DNA of 64,000 nt from Macrostomum lignano. Lineage: Eukaryota. The notes beneath the pieces are model-generated. The model searched no databases. It worked only from the letters and a program-made list of their open reading frames with translations, and had not been told where the DNA came from. The position numbers and the translations under genes are program-made. Positions 17 to 48,939 of this stretch are shown piece by piece. The stretch lies in the NCBI GenBank assembly GCA_002269645.1, contig NIVC01001628.1:1-64000 (forward strand), in the 5' to 3' direction. How positions within the stretch are numbered: position 1 is the stretch's first letter; the number at the start of each line of letters is the position of its first letter.

Positions 17-480
17 GCACCTGTCTCAGAGTGGGCGAATTCCCTTTATGCACCTGTCTCAGAGTGGGGAATTCCCTTTATGCACCTGTCTCAGAGTGGG
101 GAATTCCTTTATGCACCTGTCTCAGAGTGGGGAATTCCCTTTATGCACCTGTCTCAGAGTGGGGAATTCCCTTTATGCACCTGTCTCAGAGTGGGGAATT
201 CCCTTTATGCACCTGTCTCAGAGTGGGGAATTCCCTTCGTGCACCTGTCTCAGAGTGGGGAATTCCCTTTATGCACCTGTCTCAGAGTGGGGAATTCCCT
301 TCGTGCACCTGTCTCAGAGTGGGGAAATCCTTTTGTGCACCTGTCTCAGAGTGGGGAATTCCCTTTATGCACCTGTCTCAGAGTGGGGAATTCCCTTTGA
401 GCACCTGTCTCAGAGTGGGGAATTCCTTTTGTAACCGGTCTCAGAGTGGGGAATTCCCTTTGTACACCTGTCTCAGAGTA
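17..480. repeat. 31-33-bp minisatellite (~15 copies) GCACCTGTCTCAGAGTGGGGAATTCCCTTTAT
   Basis: Directly visible; lies 3' of the nAChR stop. Confidence 0.97.
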
Positions 481-1455
481 GGGAAATTCCTTTGTGTACC
501 TTTTTCGCTATCCTGCAGTTCTTTCGAATCTCTGGCATGTTGTCTGCATTGTTCTGTTTCGACAAAAAGTGCGCAGTCAGACGAGCGAGCATCGAACTGG
601 AAATGCTCTCGCTGAGTCTGCATTTTGAAAAAGAAAGTTCCAAGACGAAAAACTCTTCAGCGAACTGATGCTGCCGGGCCGGTGGCGTTGCTGAAGTCGT
701 CCCTGGCCACCGGCTCCCGTGGGTGTAGGGGATGATGCGGTACACGGGCGCGATCACCAGGATGATGAGCGTGCTGGCGAAGGTGCACAGCAGGTACACC
801 CAGAACAGCAGCTTGTCGACGAACTGTGCCACGCGCGCGCACTCAGCAATCAGCCGGGCCTCCGTGTCGTCGGCTTCGTGCTTGTCGATGATCTTGCGGA
901 GAGCCTCAACGACTTCGGCGTTGGCGGCTGCCGCAGCTGCTGGCCGTCGAGGCGCCGAAGTGGACGGAGCCGCCGAGGCCGCTGGAGCCGTCGGCCGCAG
1001 CGGCTGGTAGGAGTTCAACGCCACGTGGTTGGAGCGGCCGGTCGCAGACGGCTTGTAGGCCGTGCCGATGCTGTTCTCGCCGGCGGCTGCTCCGCCACCA
1101 GCCGCCTGCTGCTCCTCGGCCTCGGCTCCGGCCTGCAGGTTCTGCGCGAGGCTGTCCATGGTCAGCTTCAGGCTGAGATTGCGCAGGAAGGCGGAGGTGC
1201 TGCCGAGATCCGCGAGACCGTGAGAGTTCGAGGCACCGCCGCCGCCTCCGCCGCTGGCAGCCGTGGCCGCCGCCGAGGCGATGCCGCCGATGCCGCTGAA
1301 GCCGCTCTTGCTGGCGGCTCCCGGACGCAGCAGCAGTCGCCGGAGGAGGTCGGGCAGAGGGCGGCGGCTCGGGCCGCGGTGGTGCAGGTTGAGCACGAAG
1401 ACCGTCATGATGACCGACACTGAGGTCATGGACATGACCACCGTCAGGTAGATGC
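473..1455 (-). CDS. CHRNA: nAChR alpha subunit, exon 8 (TM3, intracellular loop, TM4, long tail)
   Basis: IYLTVVMSMTSVSVIMTVFVLNLHHRGP...ECARVAQFVDKLLFWVYLL...; cgcag| acceptor; stop TGA 473-475 (3' end less certain than the rest). Confidence 0.9.
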
Positions 1456-3844: not shown

Positions 3845-5320
3845 TAAATATCCCATTCCGAACTAAATATCCCATTCCGAACTAAATATCCCATTCCGAA
3901 CTAACTATCCCATTCCGAACTAAATATCCCATTCCGAACTAAATATCCCATTCCGAACTAACTATCCCATTCCGAACTAAATATCCCATTCCGAACTAAA
4001 TATCCCATTCCGAACTAACTATCCCATTCCGAACTAAATATCCCATTCCGAACTAACTATCCATTCCGAACTAAATATCCCATTCCGAACTAAATATCCC
4101 ATTCCGAACTAACTATCCCATTCCGAACTAAACATCCCATTCCGAACTAAATATCCCATTCCGAACTAAATATCCCATTCCGAACTAACTATCCCATTCC
4201 GAACTAAACATCCCATTCCGAACTAAATATCCCATTCCGAACTAAATATCCCATTCCGAACTAAATATCCCATTCCGAACTAAATATCCCATTCCGAACT
4301 AACTATCCCATTCCGAACTAAATATCCCATTCCGAACTACATATCCCATTCCGAACTAAACATCCCATTCCGAACTAAATATCCCATTCCGAACTAAATA
4401 TCCCATTCCGAACTAAATATCCCATTTCGAACTAACTATCCCATTCCGAACTAAATATCCCATTCCGAACTAAATATCCCATTCCGAACTAAATATCCCA
4501 TTCCGAACTACATATCCCATTCCGAACTAAATATCCCATTCCGAACTAAATATCCCATTCCGAACTAAATATCCCATTCCGAACTAAATATCCCATTCCG
4601 AACTAACTATCCCATTCCGAACTAAATATCCCATTCCGAACTAAATATCCCATTCCGAACTAAATATCCCATTCCGAACTAAATATCCCATTCCGAACTA
4701 AATATCCCATTCCGAACTAAATATCCCATTCCGAACTAAATATCCCATTCCGAACTAAACATCCAATTCCGAACTAACTATCCCATTCCGAACTAAACAT
4801 CCAATTCCGAACTAAACATCCAATTCCGAACTAAATATCCCATTCCGAACTAAATATCCCATTCCGAACTACATATCCCATTCCGAACTAAATATCCCAT
4901 TCCGAACTAAACATCCAATTCCGAACTAACTATCCCATTCCGAACTAAACATCCAATTCCGAACTAAACATCCAATTCCGAACTAAATATCCCATTCCGA
5001 ACTAAATATCCCATTCCGAACTACATATCCCATTCCGAACTACATATCCCATTCCGAGCTAACTATCCCATTCCGAACTAAATATCCCATTCCGAACTAA
5101 ACATCCAATTCCGAACTAAACATCCAATTCCGAACTAAATATCCCATTCCGAACTAAATATCCCATTCCGAACTAAATATCCCATTCCGAACTAAATATC
5201 CCATTCCGAACTAAATATCCCATTCCGAACTAAATATCCCATTCCGAACTAAACATCCAATTCCGAACTAAATACCCCATTCCGAACTAAATATCCCATT
5301 CCGAACTAAATATCCCATTC
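3845..5320. repeat. 19-bp minisatellite AAATATCCCATTCCGAACT (~77 copies), nAChR intron 6
   Basis: Directly visible. Confidence 0.98.
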
Positions 5321-7453: not shown

Positions 7454-8637
<1,184 letters not shown>

Positions 8638-13674: not shown

Positions 13675-14950
13675 TGAGAGATGAGAGAGGCAGAGATGAT
13701 AGAGGCAGAGATGAGAGAGACAGAGATGAGATAGGCAGAGATGAGAGAGGCAGAGATGAGAGGGACAGAGATGAGAGAGACATAGATGAGAGAGACAGAG
13801 ATGAGAGAGACAGAGATGAGAGAGACAGAGATGAGATAGGCAGAGATGAGAGAGGCAGAGATGAGAGAGGCAGAGATGAGATAGGCAGAGATGAGAGAGA
13901 CAGAGATGAGATAGGCAGAGATGAGAGAGACAGAGATGAGATAGGCAGAGATGAGAGAGACAGAGATGAGAGAGGCAGAGATGAGAGAGGCAGAGATGAG
14001 AGAGACAGAGATGAGATAGGCAAAGATGAGATAGGCAGAGATGAGAGATACAGAGATGAGATAGGCAGAGATGAGAGAGACAGAGATGAGATAGGCAGAG
14101 ATGAGAGAGGCAGAGATGAGAGAGGCAGAGATGAGAGAGACAGAGATGAGAGAGACAGAGATGAGAGAGACAGAGATGAGATAGGCAGAGATGACAGAGA
14201 TGAGAGAGACAGAGATGAGATAGGCAGAGATGAAAGAGACAGAGATGAGAGAGACAGAGATGAGATAGGCAGAGATGAGAGAGACAGAGATGAGAGAGGC
14301 AGAGATGAGAGAGACAGAGATGAGAGAGGCAGAGATGAGAGAGGCAGAGATGAGATAGGCAGAGATGAGAGAGACAGAGATGAGATAGGCAGAGATGAGA
14401 GAGACAGAGATGAGAGATACAGAGATGAGATAGGCAGAGATGAGATAGGCAGAGATGAAAGAGACAGAGATGAGAGAGACAGAGATGAGAGAGACAGAGA
14501 TGAGAGAGACAGAGATGAGAGAGGCAGAGATGAGAGAGACAGAGATGAGAGAGGCAGAGATGAGAGAGACAGAGATGAGATAGGCAGAGATGAGAGAGAC
14601 AGAGATGAGAGAGACAGAGATGAGAGAGGCAGAGATGAGAGAGGCAGAGATGAGAGAGACAGAGATGAGAGAGACAGAGATGAGATAGGCAGAGATGAAA
14701 GAGACAGAGATGAGAGAGACAGAGATGAGATAGGCAGAGATGAGAGAGACAGAGATGAGAGAGGCAGAGATGAGACAGACAGAGATGAGAGAGGCAGAGA
14801 TGAGAGAGACAGAGATGAGATAGGCAGAGATGAGAGAGACAGAGATGAGATAGGCAGAGATGAGAGAGACAGAGATGAGAGAGGCAGAGATGAGAGAGAC
14901 AGAGATGAGAGAGACAGAGATGAGATAGGCAGAGATGAGAGACTGAGAGA
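13675..14950. repeat. 15-bp purine-rich minisatellite GAGAGACAGAGATGA
   Basis: Directly visible. Confidence 0.98.
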
Positions 14951-18754: not shown

Positions 18755-21715
18755 CTCATTCCCGCTCCCTCTAGTCATCATTCCCGCTCCCTCTAGTCAT
18801 CATTCCCGCTCCCTCCATTTACGAGTATCGTTCCCGCTGCCTACACTCATCATTCCCGCTGCCTACACTCATCATTCCCGCTCCCTACACTCATCATTCC
18901 CGCTCCCTCCATTTACGAGTATCGTTCCCGCTCCCTACACTAATCATTCCCGCTCCCTGCACTTATTATTCCCGCTCCCTACACTCATCATTCCCGCTGC
19001 CTACACTCATCATTCCCGCTCCCTCTAGTCATCATTCCCGCTCCCTGCACTCATCATTCCCGCTCCCTACACTCATCATTCCCGCTCCCTGCACTCATCA
19101 TTCCCGCTCCCTGCACTCATCATTCCCGCTGCCTACACTCATCATTCCCGCTCCCTACACTCATCATTCCCGCTCCCTACACTCATCATTCCCGCTCCCT
19201 CTAGTCATCATTCCCGCTCCCTGCACTCATCATTCCCGCTCCCTACACTCATCATTCCCGCTCCCTGCACTCATCATTCCCGCTGCCTACACTCATCATT
19301 CCCGCTCCCTACACTCATCATTCCCGCTCCCTGCACTCATCATTCCCGCTCCCTACACTCATCATTCCCGCTCCCTCTAGTCATCATTCCCGCTCCCTGC
19401 ACTCATCATTCCCGCTCCCTACACTCATCATTCCCGCTCCCTGCACTCATCATTCCCGCTGCCTACACTCATCATTCCCGCTCCCTACACTCATCATTCC
19501 CGCTCCCTACACTCATCATTCCCGCTCCCTCTAGTCATCATTCCCGCTCCCTGCACTCATCATTCCCGCTCCCTACACTCATCATTCCCGCTCCCTCTAG
19601 TCATCATTCCCGCTCCCTACACTCATCATTCCCGCTCCCTCCATTTACGAGTATCGTTCCCGCTCCCTACACTAATCATTCCCGCTCCCTGCACTTATTA
19701 TTCCCGCTCCCTACACTCATCATTCCCGCTGCCTACACTCATCATTCCCGCTCCCTCTAGTCATCATTCCCGCTCCCTGCACTCATCATTCCCGCTCCCT
19801 ACACTCATCATTCCCGCTCCCTGCACTCATCATTCCCGCTCCCTGCACTCATCATTCCCGCTCCCTGCACTCATCATTCCCGCTCCCTACACTCATCATT
19901 CCCGCTCCCTCTAGTCATCATTCCCGCTCCCTGCACTCATCATTCCCGCTCCCTACACTCATCATTCCCGCTCCCTGCACTCATCATTCCCGCTGCCTAC
20001 ACTCATCATTCCCGCTCCCTACACTCATCATTCCCGCTCCCTACACTCATCATTCACGCTCCCTCCCTTATCATTCCCGCTCCCTCCCCTTATCATTCCC
20101 GCTCCTACACTCATCATTCACGCTCCCTCTAGTCATCATTCCCGCTCCCTACACTCATCATTCCCGCTCCCTGCACTCATCATTCCCGCTCCCTCTAGTC
20201 ATCATTCCCGCTCCCTGTAGTCATCATTCCCGCTCCCTGCACTCATCATTCCCGCTGCCTACACTCATCATTCCCGCTCCCTCTAGTCATCATTCCCGCT
20301 CCCTGCACTCATCATTCCCGCTCCCTACACTCATCATTCCCGCTCCCTGCACTCATCATTCCCGCTCCCTGCACTCATCATTCCCGCTCCCTGCACTCAT
20401 CATTCCCGCTCCCTACACTCATCATTCCCGCTCCCTCTAGTCATCATTCCCGCTCCCTGCACTCATCATTCCCGCTCCCTACACTCATCATTCCCGCTCC
20501 CTGCACTCATCATTCCCGCTGCCTACACTCATCATTCCCGCTCCCTACACTCATCATTCCCGCTCCCTACACTCATCATTCCCGCTCCCTCTAGTCATCA
20601 TTCCCGCTCCCTGCACTCATCATTCCCGCTCCCTACACTCATCATTCCCGCTCCCTCTAGTCATCATTCCCGCTCCCTACACTCATCATTCCCGCTCCCT
20701 CCATTTACGAGTATCGTTCCCGCTCCCTACACTAATCATTCCCGCTCCCTGCACTTATTATTCCCGCTCCCTACACTCATCATTCCCGCTCCCTACACTC
20801 ATCATTCCCGCTCCCTGCACTCATCATTCCCGCTGCCTACACTCATCATTCCCGCTCCCTACACTCATCATTCCCGCTCCCTACACTCATCATTCCCGCT
20901 CCCTACACTCATCATTCCCGCTCCCTCTAGTCATCATTCCCGCTCCCTGCACTCATCATTCCCGCTCCCTACACTCATCATTCCCGCTCCCTGCACTCAT
21001 CATTCCCGCTGCCTACACTCATCATTCCCGCTCCCTACACTCATCATTCCCGCTCCCTACACTCATCATTCCCGCTCCCTCTAGTCATCATTCCCGCTCC
21101 CTGCACTCATCATTCCCGCTCCCTACACTCATCATTCCCGCTCCCTCTAGTCATCATTCCCGCTCCCTACACTCATCATTCCCGCTCCCTCCATTTACGA
21201 GTATCGTTCCCGCTCCCTACACTAATCATTCCCGCTCCCTGCACTTATTATTCCCGCTCCCTACACTCATCATTCCCGCTGCCTACACTCATCATTCCCG
21301 CTCCCTCTAGTCATCATTCCCGCTCCCTGCACTCATCATTCCCGCTCCCTACACTCATCATTCCCGCTCCCTGCACTCATCATTCCAGCTCCCTACACTC
21401 ATCATTCCCGCTCCCTGCACTCATCATTCCCGCTCCCTCTAGTCATCATTCCCGCTCCCTGCACTCATCATTCCCGCTCCCTACACTCATCATTCCCGCT
21501 CCCTGCACTCATCATTCCCGCTCCCTACACTCATCATTCCCGCTCCCTGCACTCATCATTCCCGCTCCCTACACTCATCATTCCCGCTCCCTGCACTCAT
21601 CATTCCCGCTCCTACACTCATCATTCACGCTCCCTCCCTTATCATTCCCGCTCCTACACTCATCATTCCCGCTCTCTCCCCTTATCATTCACACTGCCTC
21701 CCCTTATCGTTCCCC
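18755..21715. repeat. 22-bp minisatellite TCATTCCCGCTCCCTACACTCA (~130 copies) with higher-order blocks
   Basis: Directly visible; upstream of the nAChR start. Confidence 0.98.
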
Positions 21716-23796: not shown

Positions 23797-24024
23797 CTGC
23801 AATTGATGGGTAAATAATTGCACAGCAGTCTTGACAGGTCCCTAAAACATAAAAATATGTACAGCCGATGCATTGGGGGCTTCCAGTTACCAACCTGTAT
23901 TTCTAATGAGCTTCTGTCCTATCCTATCACTGTATTCAGCTGTGTACTAACCACGACCAACTCTGCTTAACTTGAGCTGACCCGCTGGGCTAGAAAAATT
24001 CTCACTTGAAAATTTGAAACGAAC

Positions 24025-24525
24025 CTGCGGAAAAGTCTCAACACTCCATAGAGTGATGGAGATCCACTCCATCCACTGGGAAAACTGCAGCGACAGGGCC
24101 AGCTGGAGCGACACCAGCACCACCCACACGACAACGCAGACGGCCGTCACGATCAGCTTGAAGCGAGTCCGCGGTGCAAAGTAGAAGAACAGACCCAGCA
24201 GCGCCAGCTCCAGCACCGGCATGTACACAGCCGATATGTAGGCGTACAGCGGCATGACAGTCAGCTTGAACACGAAGAAGCTGTTGTTCAGCGCCGCTGT
24301 GAAGTTGGAAATTGCCCAGGCCGATGACACGCCCTGCATCGTCTTGTGGCGGATGCTGCGCCAGAACTGAGGCAGCAGGATGAGGAACCAAATGGCCGTG
24401 CTGGTCAGGCCGCCCAGGTTGGCCAGGACGCAGGTCCACTCGGGCATGTCCGGGTGGCAGTTGTGCAGCAGGATGGGCTTGTCTGTGTTGTTCACCACAC
24501 AGCTGCCATTGGCTGTCGTCGCCAT
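24025..24525 (-). CDS. PQ-loop repeat membrane protein copy A, exon 1
   Basis: Luminal N-glycosylation sequons (NGS, NNT), TM helices, LLPQFW and TFPQ motifs; donor CAG|GTTCGT. Confidence 0.88.
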
Positions 24526-42130: not shown

Positions 42131-43882
42131 AATAATTTTTTCTTGAAAATTTTCTCGACATTTTATATTTAAAATTTGCTAGTGTGTCTAAAAAGTGCAG
42201 TCCCATTTTTATACTTTCCAAAGTCTTGTATCGACCAATGATTAACATTGTTATTAATTTTTTATTACAATACAATAATCAATAACAATATAAATTTTAT
42301 TAAATTTATTGTATTGTATTAGAAATACAAAGTACTTTTTATTACGGTTTATGCTTTATTTCATAATTAGCCAAGCGGAATATAATTATTCACCATTTTT
42401 TGCTCATGCCTTTAGTCCTTCCTCAGCAATCGGTATTTTTGTACACAGTACACTGAATTTGCCATATTCATAATTATGCTCTACTCTACCTAGTACGGAG
42501 TAGCGCACGGGGCAATAAAAAATCGCAAGTCCACGGCCACTACGGCTAGCCGGACGTGGGTCCACGGTGGATCCACCGGCTAAGCCGAGAATTTTTGACT
42601 AGTGGATTTCACGGCTAGCCGTGGCTGCGAGCTGGTCTGGCCGTGCGCTCGGGGCTTAGACCCCTGTTTAGAGCCTTTGCAATCTGGCACCCTGTGTTGA
42701 CTCCTTTGCTCCGCCGCCACCCTTGCGAGCCCGTGTAGGCTTGTAGACTCTTGCCGCCTTTACTTGTTTACTTGCCTTCTCTCTCTCCGCCTCGCTTCGC
42801 CACGGCCTTAGGCCACGCCTCTGCCACTCTCAGCCACGCCACTTCCACTACCTATCTATCAAACTCGTTGTTGTGTAGCCGCCAGTGCATTGTTACGAAT
42901 CCAACTTGCATTTCTGTTGACAATAAACCAAGTCTGCAGCCATTGATTGCATTAACTTTAACTTTAACTGATATTACTGCCAAGTGCTACCGCTACAAAT
43001 TTGCCTCTGCCGCATTCATTTGCCTTCGCTTATTCTCGGGGCCGCCACGCTAGTATTCGTCACAATAGGCATCATTTCTCTTTGGTGTCCTGCGAAATTC
43101 TAACTCCTTTATTGAACTTTCACATACGGGAATTCTGTAGCTGAAAGTTCTATTAGCGAGTCTGCAAAAGCGTCTTTCGACTCACTTCTTCCTTGTACGC
43201 GTCATTTAAACTCTTCCTTAAACTCTGACGCATTTCCTATATTCTGCCGAATCTCTCGATCGTTCCATAAAATCTTCGCACTCTAAATAGTCTGGCAAAT
43301 TAAGTCGCATGCTGATGGTAGATCAAAATTGGCTAGCAATTATGTTTTCCTATGGTTTACCTCAATTTTTTACAGAGTCGCACCTCTGATCAAAAGTTGT
43401 TTACCATATCATAATATCCCGGCTTGGTATTTTGGTATTTTGAATTCTAACATGTCTTGTCGGTCTTAATTCAAGACAATTCCTAAGTTCTTCAGCTAAG
43501 AGTGTTAATGCGTCATTAATACCTGACATTCTAAGTCATTACTTCACGTAATAATTAAATTGCCTCTCACTGTATCTTGATCCCAAGCCAAGAGCCAATA
43601 GTCAACAGCTACATCTCAAGTTGTTTCCGTATTTCACACAGATTATTCATCCAAAAGCAAAAATTATGCTGATTGGACTCATTATACTCTGTAATTAATA
43701 AATGGCGAAACTTTTCAAATTGTGCTCAGTAAGTATTTGTAAAAGGTTACAATTAATAGAATATCGGCTTTTTGACATGTTAATCTGCAACGGGGACAGC
43801 GGCACTGATAGCAAAGTTTCTAATTAACCTGGAAGGCAACGGGGACCGCGTCATTGATAAGAATTGAGCATCTTGTTTTTCA

Positions 43883-44220
43883 TTAGGCTGGCACCAGCTG
43901 GACTGTCTCTCCGTCGTTCTCGCCGTCGCTGTCCCGGCACCGGCGATGCGTTTGCCGCCAGACGAACAGCGCGCACACCGGCAGGATGCACATGGCGCAC
44001 ACTGTTGCCATGGCAACCGCTGCCGGACGTAGGACAGACGTCGATGCGGCTACGTCGGCGCGGAAGAAAGCGCAGTCCTGGGGGCCGCCAATGGCGACGT
44101 AGGGCCGCGGCCCCAACACCCTGGACGACGAGTTCGCCTCCGGACAAGACGACGAAGCAAAGCCGATGCGACGACCGGCTCGGTCGAATTCGACCAGGAA
44201 TCCCGAGAGGAAGGTGGCAC
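43883..44220 (-). CDS. BACE: BACE-like protease, exon 4 (TM helix and acidic cytosolic tail)
   Basis: GATFLSGFLVEFDRAGRRIGFA...VAMATVCAMCILPVCALFVW...DGENDGETVQLVPA*; total 503 aa, similar to BACE1. Confidence 0.93.
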
Positions 44221-44827: not shown

Positions 44828-45249
44828 CGAGAATAGCTCCATCGCTTGTGCTCTGAATTCCGAAGCGGAAACAGGACCCATTTCCGGCTGGAGAGCCACC
44901 GAGCACGACCGGTCGCAGGTACTGGGCGGGGCTCAGCTCGAGGTCCACCGTCTGGTTATCCGGCGTCACCAGGCTGAAGGTGACGGATGGAAAAGCGTCG
45001 AGAAGCCTCTTGGTGGCTTCCAGTGAACCGTCGCTCGAGCACAGGAGGCCCAGGCCGTTAAAGAAGCGGTTGCCGAGCTCCGGCTGTTGCGCCCCCACCT
45101 GCTGAGCGACGCGAGCGTGCACCCGGGCCGGCAGGCGAATGTCACCGACGCCAGAGTGCAGGATGGCCTTGTCCATGTTGTACTCCTTGCAGTCCATGCC
45201 GAGCGAGGACCGGCCGACCTTGATGTCGGCTATGACCACTTCATAGTAC
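44828..45249 (-). CDS. BACE: BACE-like protease, exon 3 (second lobe; DSG replaced by HSG)
   Basis: WYYEVVIADIKVG...MDCKEYNMDKAILHSGVGDIRLP aligns with BACE1 WYYEV...[23 protein letters not shown]. Confidence 0.95.
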
Positions 45250-45462: not shown

Positions 45463-45965
45463 CAGTCCCAGCGCACGGAGGCGTACAGCATGTCGGTGCG
45501 GTTCGCCTGCCCGATCCTGATGAAGCTCCCTAAACCCGCGTCGCCCCCGCACAGCTGCAGGCAGAACGGCACGGGAGGCGATCCCGTCGACATGGCGTCG
45601 CCCAGCTGCCTCGCCAGCGTGTCGGCGAAGTTTCCGCCGCCAGCCGCTGTCCGCGCATTCGACAGCCGTTCGAAGGCCAGGCCGACAGAGGCCTGCCAGG
45701 CCCCGGCGCCGGCCTGGAAGTAGCCGGAGCTGCGCTCGGCGACGCTGAAGGCGGCGCGGACTGGTCCGGGCACAGGGCCTGGCAGTGACACGACGTCCGT
45801 GGCCAGGTGGCCCTCCCAGAAGCCGGTGGTGTAGGGGGTGCGCACCAGCTGGTGCTGCCAGACCAGCGAACTGGACGACTTGGCGTCGAACCACCGGTCA
45901 AGGCCGGGCGTCTTGGCGCCAGCCGTTACGAAGTCGCTGCTGCCTGTGTCCAACTTTGCTGTGAT
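45463..45965 (-). CDS. BACE: BACE-like protease, exon 2 (first catalytic DTGS, flap)
   Basis: ITAKLDTGSSDF; flap TPYTTGFWEGHLATDVVSLP; FCLQLCG; phase-2 donor TG|GTGAGA. Confidence 0.95.
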
Positions 45966-46159
45966 CTGCGAGATCAGGTTAGATGAATTTATTTCAATTT
46001 AATAGCCTTCTGTCCAGTAGACAGTGTAGAATGTGGCGCAAAAGGCTTGTTCGGAGGACAAAAAAAGTATTCGTGCTGTTTTCTTGATTCAAGGGGCAGC
46101 TCGGAATTCAGAAAACGGGCCAGATGACTCAGCAGACAGTGGGCCAGATGAATCAGCAT

Positions 46160-47550
46160 TTGAAACTAACTGGAGTTCACAGGAACTGAAGATTTCAACC
46201 AATTGGAGTTCACAGAAACTGAAGAGTTGAAACCAACTGGAGTTCACGGGAACTGAAGATTTAAAACCAACTATAGTTCACGGGAACTGAAGAGTTAAAA
46301 AACAACAACTGGAGTTCACGGGAACTGAAGATTTGAAACCAACTATAGTTCACGGGAACTGAAGATTTGAAACCAACTATAGTTCACGGGAACTGAAGAT
46401 TTAAAACCAACTATAGTTCACGGGAACTGAAGATTTGAAACCAACTGGAGTTCACGGGAACTGAAGATTTGAAACTAACTGGAGTTCACGGGAACTGAAG
46501 ATTTAAAACCAACTATAGTTCACGGGAACTGAAGATTTGAAACCAACTATAGTTCACGGGAACTGAAGATTTAAAACCAACTATAGTTCACGGGAACTGA
46601 AGATTTGAAACCAACTATAGTTCACGGGAACTGAAGATTTAAAACCAACTATAGTTCACGGGAACTGAAGATTTGAAACCAACTGGAGTTCACGGGAACT
46701 GAAGATTTGAAACTAACTGGAGTTCACGGGAACTGAAGATTTGAAACCAACTATAGTTCACGGGAACTGAAGATTTGAAACCAACTATAGTTCACGGGAA
46801 CTGAAGATTTAAAACCAACTATAGTTCACGGGAACTGAAGATTTAAAACCAACTATAGTTCACGGGAACTGAAGATTTGACACCAACTGGAGTTCACGGG
46901 AACTGAAGATTTAAAACCAACTATAGTTCACGGGAACTGAAGATTTGAAACCAACTATAGTTCACGGGAACTGAAGATTTAAAACCAACTATAGTTCACG
47001 GGAACTGAAGATTTGACACCAACTGGAGTTCACGGGAACTGAAGATTTGAAACCAACTGGAGTTCACGGGAACTGAAGATTTGAAACCAACTGGAGTTCA
47101 CGGGAACTGAAGATTTGAAACCAACTATAGTTCACGGGAACTGAAGATTTGACACCAACTGGAGTTCACGGGAACTGAAGATTTGAAACCAACTGGAGTT
47201 CACGGGAACTGAAGATTTGAAACTAACTGGAGTTCACGGGAACTGAAGATTTAAAACCAACTATAGTTCACGGGAACTGAAGATTTGACACCAACTGGAG
47301 TTCACGGGAACTGAAGATTTGAAACTAACTGGAGTTCACGGGAACTGAAGATTTGAACCCATTGCAGTTTACGGGAACGGAAGATTTTAAACCAACTGGT
47401 GTTCACGGGAACTGAATGGAAATTTTACCAACTGGTGTTTACGGGAACTGAATGGAAATTTTACCGACTGGAGTTCACGGGAACTGAATGGAAATTTTAC
47501 CCGACTGGAGTTCACGGGAACTGAATGGAAATTTTAACCGACTGGAGTTC
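46160..47550. repeat. 34-bp minisatellite (~40 copies), BACE intron 1
   Basis: GGAACTGAAGATTTGAAACCAACTATAGTTCACG. Confidence 0.98.
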
Positions 47551-47608
47551 ACGGTGACTTAAGTTTAACCGCACTGTGAGCTCCGGCACCTCTGCCCGCC
47601 CAGCTCAC

Positions 47609-47857
47609 AATCTGCCTGGGTGTACCAACGCCAAGCCGCAGGCAGTAGGCAGCCTCAGGTCGACCGTGAATGGCGCTGCCGTTCACCAGCTGGAAGACAC
47701 CCCTCTGTCCGAACAGCTGGACGCTGTCCACTGGCAGTCCGGATTTGGCGGGCGCCACGAAGTTCAGGCGAGTCAGCGGCAGCTGCAGGGCCGCCGTGGC
47801 GGGGAGGCAGGCCAGAGCCGCGCAGACTGGCGGCAGCAGAGTGAGAAGAATTCCCAT
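47609..47857 (-). CDS. BACE: BACE/memapsin-like aspartic protease, exon 1 (signal + pro region)
   Basis: ATG 47857; MGILLTLLPPVCAALACLPATAA signal; AYCLRLGVGTPRQI aligns with BACE1 YYVEMTVGSPPQT; donor ATT|GTGAGC. Confidence 0.85.
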
Positions 47858-48939
47858 AGTGTTGAGCACGGCTACAGCAGTTGCAGCTAAGCGGAAACAA
47901 AAACTTTTTATTTATTTTATGCCTTTTTATGACCATGCAGAGAGCAGCGAACTGGACGAACATCTGACGCGGAGCAGCTGTTGCAGTTTGGAGCAGCCGG
48001 TTGGAAACGATGGTTTTTTCTGATTTCCCGAGAAATGAGAAATGCGCTCAAGTACCCGACACAGGTTAAGAAACTGATTTCTGCTTGAAAGTTTAAATTC
48101 TCCTATCGTTCTGTTTAAAATATTGATATTTTTCTCACTACTCTACTGACCGACCGTGAGTAGTATGAAACAGATGCAACACGAATTTTTAATTTTGCAA
48201 TCTTTTTACATTTTATGACGATAGTAATGCGGCCAGAATATGGAAATGCAGAGTCTGTTCAGCTTCCTCATCAGCTTCATCATCATGGGGGTGGGGTATT
48301 ACGTAATCCGACTCCGCCTTCAGAACTGACAGGCGTCATTTGCACCAGCCACAATGCATTCGAGCTGCTACAAGGGCGAGTGAAACTCGGGCAGCATCGC
48401 TTTGGCCTGCAGCGGCCACGCCATCATTCGGTCTGGGATTCCTTGGACAGATTAGAAAAATACTGCGCAGGGGAACAGGGAGGCTGGGGATGAAGCCGCG
48501 TGCCTGCGGACTGCGCAAAATCATCAGTTCTCTCTCGACCCGCAGGAGCCGTGCCGGCATCAAAGCCGAAGTGTCCGCCTTCGGTCAGGAGGCCTGCCCG
48601 CCCCGGCCGGCCGTTGACCGTCGCCTGTCCGCTCACCTTGGAATTAAAAAAGATTAAGTCTGTGCCCTTTAATAAAATTCTGGCCGAATAGAAAGACAAA
48701 GTAAACCGCTTTCTGATGATGGCTAAGAGAAAGTTCAGGAAAATCTCCAGTTTTCTTTTATTGCAAAATCTAAATGCAAGTCTTTAAAAATAGCTTTGAT
48801 GGGTTATGGAAATCAGGCTTCATCAATAAATAATTATGCTAGTTCACTGCACTAGAAGTTGTCAGCTTTGTAGTCTGTGAATTTAATTGCGTATATAATT
48901 GCTGCTGTCTGCTCCGAGCTCAGGCCTCTGCTTTCCAAC

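Follow-up and report, generated by a model that had tools for sequence, protein, structure and literature searches.

The gene and its model

An active protease of peptidase family A1 carries two catalytic aspartates, one in each lobe, and the question raised by a locus of Macrostomum lignano is what becomes of such a protein when the second of them is a histidine. The gene lies in a 64-kb stretch of genomic DNA (positions 1 to 64,000 of the contig, called the window throughout). The initial annotation, made from the letters alone, described it as a relative of BACE1 and left two options, a membrane-anchored Asp/His enzyme with a geometry opposite to that of the Plasmodium histo-aspartic protease (HAP) or a catalytically dead BACE kept for substrate binding or trafficking.

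The gene region (4.7 kb) is 100% identical to M. lignano contig NIVC01001628.1 (locus L003) in assembly GCA_002269645.1 (Mlig_3_7). A six-frame reading combined with splice sites gives four GC-rich exons on the minus strand, with GT-AG borders, that join in frame to encode 503 amino acids (Table 1). This protein corresponds to GenBank BOX15_Mlig022958g1 (PAA65675.1/PAA65689.1, P0052), a 'partial' record whose sole difference is a nine-residue in-frame 5' extension. The intact four-exon gene proposed at the outset is thus upheld both by its splice sites and by the GenBank model. The window holds this single gene, no second copy of it having been found there by tblastn.

A polypyrimidine tract with an AG (TTTTTGTTTCCGCTTAG) is located 29 nt upstream of the ATG (47858-47886, minus strand), and the RNA-derived GenBank CDS starts 2 nt past this AG. 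Judged by its letters, the arrangement looks like a spliced-leader trans-splice acceptor, and trans-splicing does occur in M. lignano (PMC5730564). At the other end, neither AATAAA nor ATTAAA is present in the ~580 nt 3' of the stop codon.

Table 1. Features of the BACE-like gene and other coding regions in the 64-kb window (amino acid numbering follows the 503-aa model)
Feature	Position	Strand	Description
Exon 1	47609..47857	-	Codons 1-83; ATG 47857-47855; donor GTGAGC; hydrophobic signal-like N-terminus (residues 1-24), then short pro-region
Exon 2	45463..45965	-	Codons 84-251, last codon split; N-lobe; includes Trp133
Asp89 codon (DTGSS)	45950-45948	-	Exon 2
Flap Tyr128 codon	45833-45831	-	Exon 2
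Exon 3	44828..45249	-	Codons 251-392; C-lobe with MDCKEYN and the altered catalytic motif
Altered catalytic motif	45141..45158	-	H282-S-G-V-G-D287, replacing D-S-G-T-T-N/D
Exon 4	43883..44220	-	Codons 392-503 and TAA; end of protease domain (ILG...FDRAGRRIGFA), Cys417, Cys441, TM helix, acidic cytosolic tail
TM segment	43958..44026	-	PAAVAMATVCAMCILPVCALFVW; residues 457-479; aligns to BACE1 TM region
Stop codon TAA	43885-43883	-	Exon 4
Single ORF, 635 aa	56767-58674	-	Two N-terminal LIM domains and C-terminal villin headpiece (abLIM/dematin-like actin-binding architecture)
Exon-sized ORF	473-1441	-	Neurotransmitter-gated (Cys-loop) ion channel TM region (PF02932, 7.9e-11)
Exon-sized ORF	23947-24525	-	PQ-loop repeat (PF04193, 5.3e-07)

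Family, fold and topology

Sequence, fold and topology all place the protein in the BACE/memapsin clade of family A1. The Pfam profile PF00026 matches residues 71-414 (6e-20), a weak additional match to TAXi_C reflecting the common fold only, and the peptidase A1 fold is also predicted by an AlphaFold2 model based on 106 homologues (mean pLDDT 82.9, pTM 0.82), in which residues 271-290 reach a pLDDT of 94-96 and residues 448-487 form a helix. BACE1 and BACE2 (memapsin 2 and memapsin 1), the type I membrane proteases of the family, are the best match in both sequence and structure. The top sequence match in the PDB is full-length BACE1 (6ej3, 5.9e-60), with an alignment that extends through the TM region, and the best 50 matches of the predicted structure in a Foldseek search of the PDB are all BACE1 (E ~1e-37, target-normalised TM-score ~0.86).

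The motifs of the BACE subfamily are present (MDCKEYN, QYLRP and FDRAGRRIGFA, the last being FDRxxxRIGFA in the form common to both proteins), and the nearest relatives are BACE proteins. DTGSS, the flap sequence YTxGxW, six aligned ectodomain cysteines, one C-terminal TM helix with cysteine residues and an acidic tail are likewise common to BACE1 and the M. lignano protein. The cysteines (222, 271, 321, 377, 417 and 441) align to positions with a conservation of 95% or more among BACE-like proteins, their pairing into the three BACE disulfides being itself a prediction. Hydropathy reveals only two strongly hydrophobic stretches, the signal-like residues 1-24 and the TM residues 457-479, and together with the AlphaFold2 model and the alignment to BACE1 this predicts a type I topology in which a signal-like N-terminus is followed by one C-terminal TM helix and a short, acidic cytosolic tail (RDSDGENDGETVQLVPA).

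BACE1 has a furin site, RLPR, and a DISLL motif in its tail. The tail of the M. lignano protein, by comparison, ends in QLVPA. Its pro-region (residues 25-88) contains no furin-type RXXR site, so that its zymogen processing may differ from that of BACE1. The pro-region of the canonical paralogue described below carries RHLR, and AlphaFold2 confidence is <50 at residues 38-67 of the His-bearing protein.

A histidine in place of the second catalytic aspartate

Codon 282 reads CAC at 45158-45156 of the minus strand (GTG at 45156-45158 of the plus strand), within the peptide KAILHSGVGDIRLP, which HMMER aligns in such a way that His282 falls on BACE1 D228. The aspartate-to-histidine replacement reported initially is therefore confirmed by both codon and alignment, and it does not come alone, since BACE1 T231 and T232 are replaced by Val and Gly, respectively. 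The N-lobe machinery is intact, with DTGSS (Asp89), Ser92-Ser93, the flap Tyr128 and Trp133. In the C-lobe motif, Ser283 and Gly284 are retained and the supporting Thr (BACE1 T231) has become Val285. In pepsin-like proteases, the Thr or Ser at this +3 position hydrogen-bonds the C-lobe catalytic Asp (PMC4987639). All copies of the gene thus have one aspartate (Asp89 in the N-lobe DTG) and one histidine (His282 in the C-lobe HSG) where an active A1 peptidase has two aspartates.

How unusual this is can be read from an alignment in which the 150 top-ranking cluster representatives of an exhaustive phmmer search (1.84 billion proteins) were combined with named hits. In the D228 column there is Asp in ~141 sequences, Asn in one (P0084) and misaligned fragments in two, while His is found only in the M. 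lignano pair. The columns affected by D282H, T285V and T286G are conserved at 97%, 95% and 89%, respectively, and within this BACE-like alignment the T-to-V and T-to-G changes beside the His are unique to the M. lignano gene. The one sequence with Asn in place of the second catalytic Asp (KTIVNSGTTDLRFP) is a BACE-like representative of 518 aa whose N-lobe motif is absent from the alignment, and it may represent, going by these residues, a second and independent catalytic-site loss in the clade or simply a fragmentary model.

That the His codon stands for GAC (Asp), a single base away, through faulty sequencing or assembly is vanishingly improbable and already effectively refuted, CAC being found at three separately assembled Mlig_3_7 loci, i.e. 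that of the window, L002 (99.9% identical) and L001 (the Mlig022958g3 copy, ~94-97% identical over the gene), the HSGVGD motif being found in three UniProt M. lignano models as well and two neighbouring family-unique substitutions accompanying the His, which bears out the earlier view that a lone base error was unlikely.

A different fate befell the suggestion that a 'new' Asp five residues downstream of the His could compensate for the lost one. The canonical paralogue (DSGTTDIRLP) and several other BACE-like proteins with an intact catalytic Asp also carry this residue, so that Asp287 predates the His and was rejected as a compensating change.

A fast-evolving duplicate and its canonical paralogue

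Whether a DSG-bearing paralogue exists had been left to be checked, and one does: BOX15_Mlig005505g1 (PAA68318.1, P0002), a canonical BACE-like protein with DTGSSNF and DSGTTDIRLP that is encoded in the same genome. It is the nearest relative of the window protein (41-43% identity, 323 bits, others scoring at most 267 bits), and the two genes are sisters in an NJ tree, the His gene having the longer branch. They have in common their architecture, an Asp at +5 (…TTDIRLP and …VGDIRLP) and an xLVP ending of the tail. However, identity to mollusc, annelid, echinoderm and vertebrate BACEs is 41-45% for the canonical paralogue and 31-35% for the His gene, which evolves faster. The same difference is seen at the 62 columns with a family conservation of 80% or more, of which the canonical paralogue, with its DTGSSNF and DSGTT, keeps 60 and the window protein 47.

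The conserved residues that have been lost include D282H, T285V and T286G in the catalytic motif. Others line the cleft, with G70A in the 10s loop, F165Y (BACE1 F108) and G175A/I176S/L177V (BACE1 G117-I118-L119), which, when compared with BACE1, amounts to altered 10s-loop and S1/S3 residues. N94D, A96V, I159A, P187A, P246S and a few more complete the list. What these residues show is a scaffold that has been conserved while the catalytic and substrate cleft was remodelled, in what appears to be a fast-evolving lineage-specific duplicate.

No orthologue was found in another species, either by a word-indexed search of 5.8 billion proteins or by the exhaustive phmmer search of 1.84 billion representatives, and in both there was nothing between the M. 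lignano copies, which are 99% identical, and the canonical paralogue at 41%. The best explanation for these sequence relationships would be that the His gene is a Macrostomum-lineage duplicate of an animal BACE/memapsin-type membrane aspartic protease. Since only ~43% of the amino acids are identical between the His protein and its canonical paralogue, the duplication is old.

Copies of the gene and selection

In none of the three loci is there a stop, frameshift or splice defect, the ORF and its GT-AG borders being intact throughout. Between the copy in the window (g1) and the g3 copy there are 14 coding differences, of which 8 are synonymous and 6 nonsynonymous. They translate into a dS of 0.020, a dN of 0.0054 and a dN/dS of ~0.27, an estimate that rests on only these 14 differences between recently diverged copies. 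The deficit of nonsynonymous changes has a binomial p of 0.014 under neutrality, and none of the six replacements is at a family-conserved column. Neutral evolution, with a dN/dS near 1, was one of the outcomes named by the initial annotation as fatal to its proposal, and it is not what this comparison, small as it is, gives.

Divergence between g1 and g3 (L001) is uneven along the gene. It is only 0.3% in the 300-bp flanks of the CDS (43583-43882 and 47858-48157) and 0.9% in the CDS, against 2.8% and 7.2% in introns 2 and 3, respectively, and this mosaic suggests gene conversion or unequal constraint as possible causes. The low divergence of the flanks is why the dN/dS test between copies may be blurred by gene conversion.

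Most of intron 1 is occupied by a 34-bp minisatellite (window 46158-47554, ~41 copies, 91% matches). The intron is 1643 bp long in the window and in L002 and 1309 bp in the g3 copy, so the length of the array varies between copies.

UniProt A0A1I8I215 (P0053) is a 670-aa model of the same gene in which upstream ORF sequence (window ~48400-48600) is fused N-terminally, VGAQ is missing and exon 4 is frame-shifted after residue ~435. It is probably a mis-prediction. Its substitutions are a mixture of g1 and g3 states, which suggests that a third haplotype may exist.

Expression

Another outcome named as fatal was a gene that is not expressed, and here too the evidence points the other way. The Mlig gene models derive from a genome-guided RNA-seq assembly, their boundaries being taken from trans-splicing and poly(A) reads (PMC5730564). 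In addition, the primers used for in situ hybridization (ISH) by Weber et al. (2018), GGACAGAGGGGTGTCTTCC and CAGAAGCCGGTGGTGTAGG, match the spliced CDS perfectly (nt 148-398) and give a product of exactly the reported 251 bp that spans the exon 1/2 junction, the reverse primer mapping to 45817-45835. It follows that the gene is transcribed and that its splicing is that of the model. The ISH probe does not distinguish the near-identical copies, and the His codon lies outside the 403-nt transcript RNA815_50706.

As to where the gene is expressed, the record for Mlig022958 comes from the supplements of Brand et al. (2020) only. These place Maclig_37v3@Mlig022958.g7 in the positional class 'Tail' and give it the ISH annotation 'testes', transferred from the Weber et al. 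(2018) probe RNA815_50706 (PMC7336406). The 'testes' pattern and the 'Tail' class do not coincide. The screen from which RNA815_50706 originates selected tail-enriched and socially plastic transcripts (PMC5977470), and a later re-analysis records no social signal for the Mlig022958 gene (PMC7336406). Mlig022958 is absent from the supplements of PMC5816591 and PMC12896417, as is RNA815_50706 from the text of Weber et al. (2018) and those of its supplements that were covered. A literature search joining Macrostomum with BACE found no publication.

A pseudoprotease of the male reproductive system?

Our preferred reading, to which we assign a probability of about 55%, is that the His protein, BACE-derived and lineage-specific, is a pseudoprotease with type I membrane topology that acts in the male reproductive system. 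It has what defines such a protein, namely the replacement of an essential catalytic residue in a homologue that, going by its sequence and its copies, appears to be conserved, expressed and constrained. In the mechanism that we envisage, the C-lobe catalytic unit has been changed, by Asp228 to His and the adjoining Thr-Thr to Val-Gly, and the cleft remodelled, on a pepsin-like scaffold that has kept its predicted signal peptide, its single C-terminal TM helix and its acidic tail. Hydrolysis of peptide bonds at a useful rate would most likely be lost, and the retained cleft and ectodomain might instead engage a partner in the male reproductive system without cutting it, for example by holding, chaperoning or shielding substrates of the canonical BACE-like enzyme.

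Loss of catalysis is favoured because an essential Asp has been replaced, the Thr at +3 is now Val and the cleft has drifted while the scaffold was kept. Of the two options offered initially, the dead BACE is the better supported, as it fits the loss of Thr285, the cleft losses on a conserved scaffold and the precedent of inactive homologues. The intact DTGSS, flap Tyr and Trp would seem to count against a pseudoprotease, a dead enzyme having not strictly any need of them. So does the fact that a His can serve as a general base, and that an Asp/His enzyme of family A1 is workable, as Plasmodium HAP shows.

The precedents are of two kinds. The cockroach proteins Bla g 2, Per a 2 and Lma-p54 are inactive homologues within family A1 (PMC9541408), and like these, as well as ruminant PAGs and the plant xylanase inhibitor TAXI-I, the His protein combines a pepsin-like fold with an altered catalytic motif. 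Binding roles have been proposed for such homologues, some of which are found in reproductive or secretory tissue (PMC9541408; PMC2682831). However, they are secreted, soluble and members of other A1 clades, whereas the His protein is membrane-anchored, belongs to the BACE clade and has an intact N-lobe motif. Mammalian sperm rely on several pseudoproteases, the transmembrane ADAM1a/2/3/6 and also PRSS37 (PMC9114714). Like the His protein, these are membrane-bound relatives of proteases that are expressed in the testis and have had catalytic residues replaced, and they act through binding or complex formation. Their folds are unrelated, those of metallo- and serine proteases, and a binding role for the His protein that is modelled on them would be a functional analogy only.

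If the protein is indeed a pseudoprotease, it would be a membrane-anchored, BACE-clade addition to the known inactive A1 homologues, unusual for its membrane anchor, its clade and its D-to-H change at the second site. M. lignano, with RNAi and transgenesis, would then be a tractable animal in which to probe a non-cutting BACE scaffold in the male germline, which could inform non-catalytic partner binding by BACE-type ectodomains. Whether the protein is active or not, its effect on current understanding would nevertheless be modest because loss of catalytic residues is common in lineage-specific, reproduction-related paralogues, and the protein is most likely a genuine offshoot of its enzyme family, though a fairly ordinary one.

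Drift of a redundant duplicate towards a pseudogene, with no function of its own and with transcription and an intact ORF that persist only through recent loss of constraint or recent polyploidy, is an unlikely alternative that nonetheless accounts for some of the data. The long branch, the loss of 15 of 62 family-conserved residues, a catalytic Asp among them, and the lack of an orthologue outside M. lignano in protein searches of 1.84 billion representatives would all be expected of it, and many genes are duplicated in M. lignano, which is a neopolyploid (PMC5730564; PMC10733133). It is harder to reconcile with an old duplication that has left ORF and splicing intact in three of three loci, with the retention of the six disulfide cysteines, the TM helix and the tail, with the dN/dS of 0.27 (p=0.014, from the 14 differences) and with expression that is tissue-restricted.

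Still more doubtful is the reading in which the protein is an active, atypical Asp/His membrane protease, a 'mirror image' of HAP. Asp89 would work with His282 as a general base or oxyanion partner, and the pH optimum might be shifted towards neutrality or the specificity altered. Such an enzyme is favoured by the intactness of the N-lobe apparatus and the flap, as it is by the retained Ser283 and Gly284, the confidently predicted fold at the site and what there is of purifying selection between the copies (0.27 from 14 differences). So does the pseudo-twofold symmetry of the A1 active site, given that HAP is active with a His at the first position. However, the supporting Thr285 is now Val, several S1/S3 cleft residues are altered, not one of ~141 related representatives uses His at the second position and the Asp287 proposed to compensate is ancestral. 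Moreover, to our knowledge, replacement of either Asp abolishes activity in ordinary A1 enzymes.

HAP (plasmepsin III of Plasmodium falciparum) and the M. lignano protein both have an A1 fold in which one catalytic Asp has become His. In HAP, the His is at the first site, in the N-lobe DTG, and the C-lobe Asp is kept, whereas in the M. lignano protein the arrangement is reversed (Asp89/His282). The His protein is thus not of the HAP type, its His being on the other lobe. HAP is also a soluble enzyme of the food vacuole with an altered flap, whereas the M. lignano protein, which is membrane-bound, keeps the flap Tyr. HAP is named as the exception to DTGS (PMC4987639). The strongest form of the claim, in which the protein functions as an Asp/His protease in the membrane and would be the first enzyme of family A1 to have a His at the second (C-lobe) position, a pseudo-symmetric counterpart of HAP, is slightly less probable again than Asp/His catalysis as such. 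An enzyme of this sort might work best near neutral pH, as would suit the cell surface or a seminal environment. If it were active, it would show that a pepsin-type active site can accommodate His in either lobe, with implications for what the two aspartates do.

Other features of the window

The window is unusually rich in long minisatellite and microsatellite arrays, with 35 TRF rows at a score of at least 200. Their periods range from 4 to 52 bp, with up to 132 copies (e.g. 18756-21690, 3845-5320, 13677-14942, 1463-2553 and 7454-8637), and several have a strong GC skew, such as -0.5 to -0.7 at 18-22 kb. The ORF with LIM domains and a villin headpiece (Table 1) is on the same strand as the BACE-like gene, ~9 kb upstream of it.
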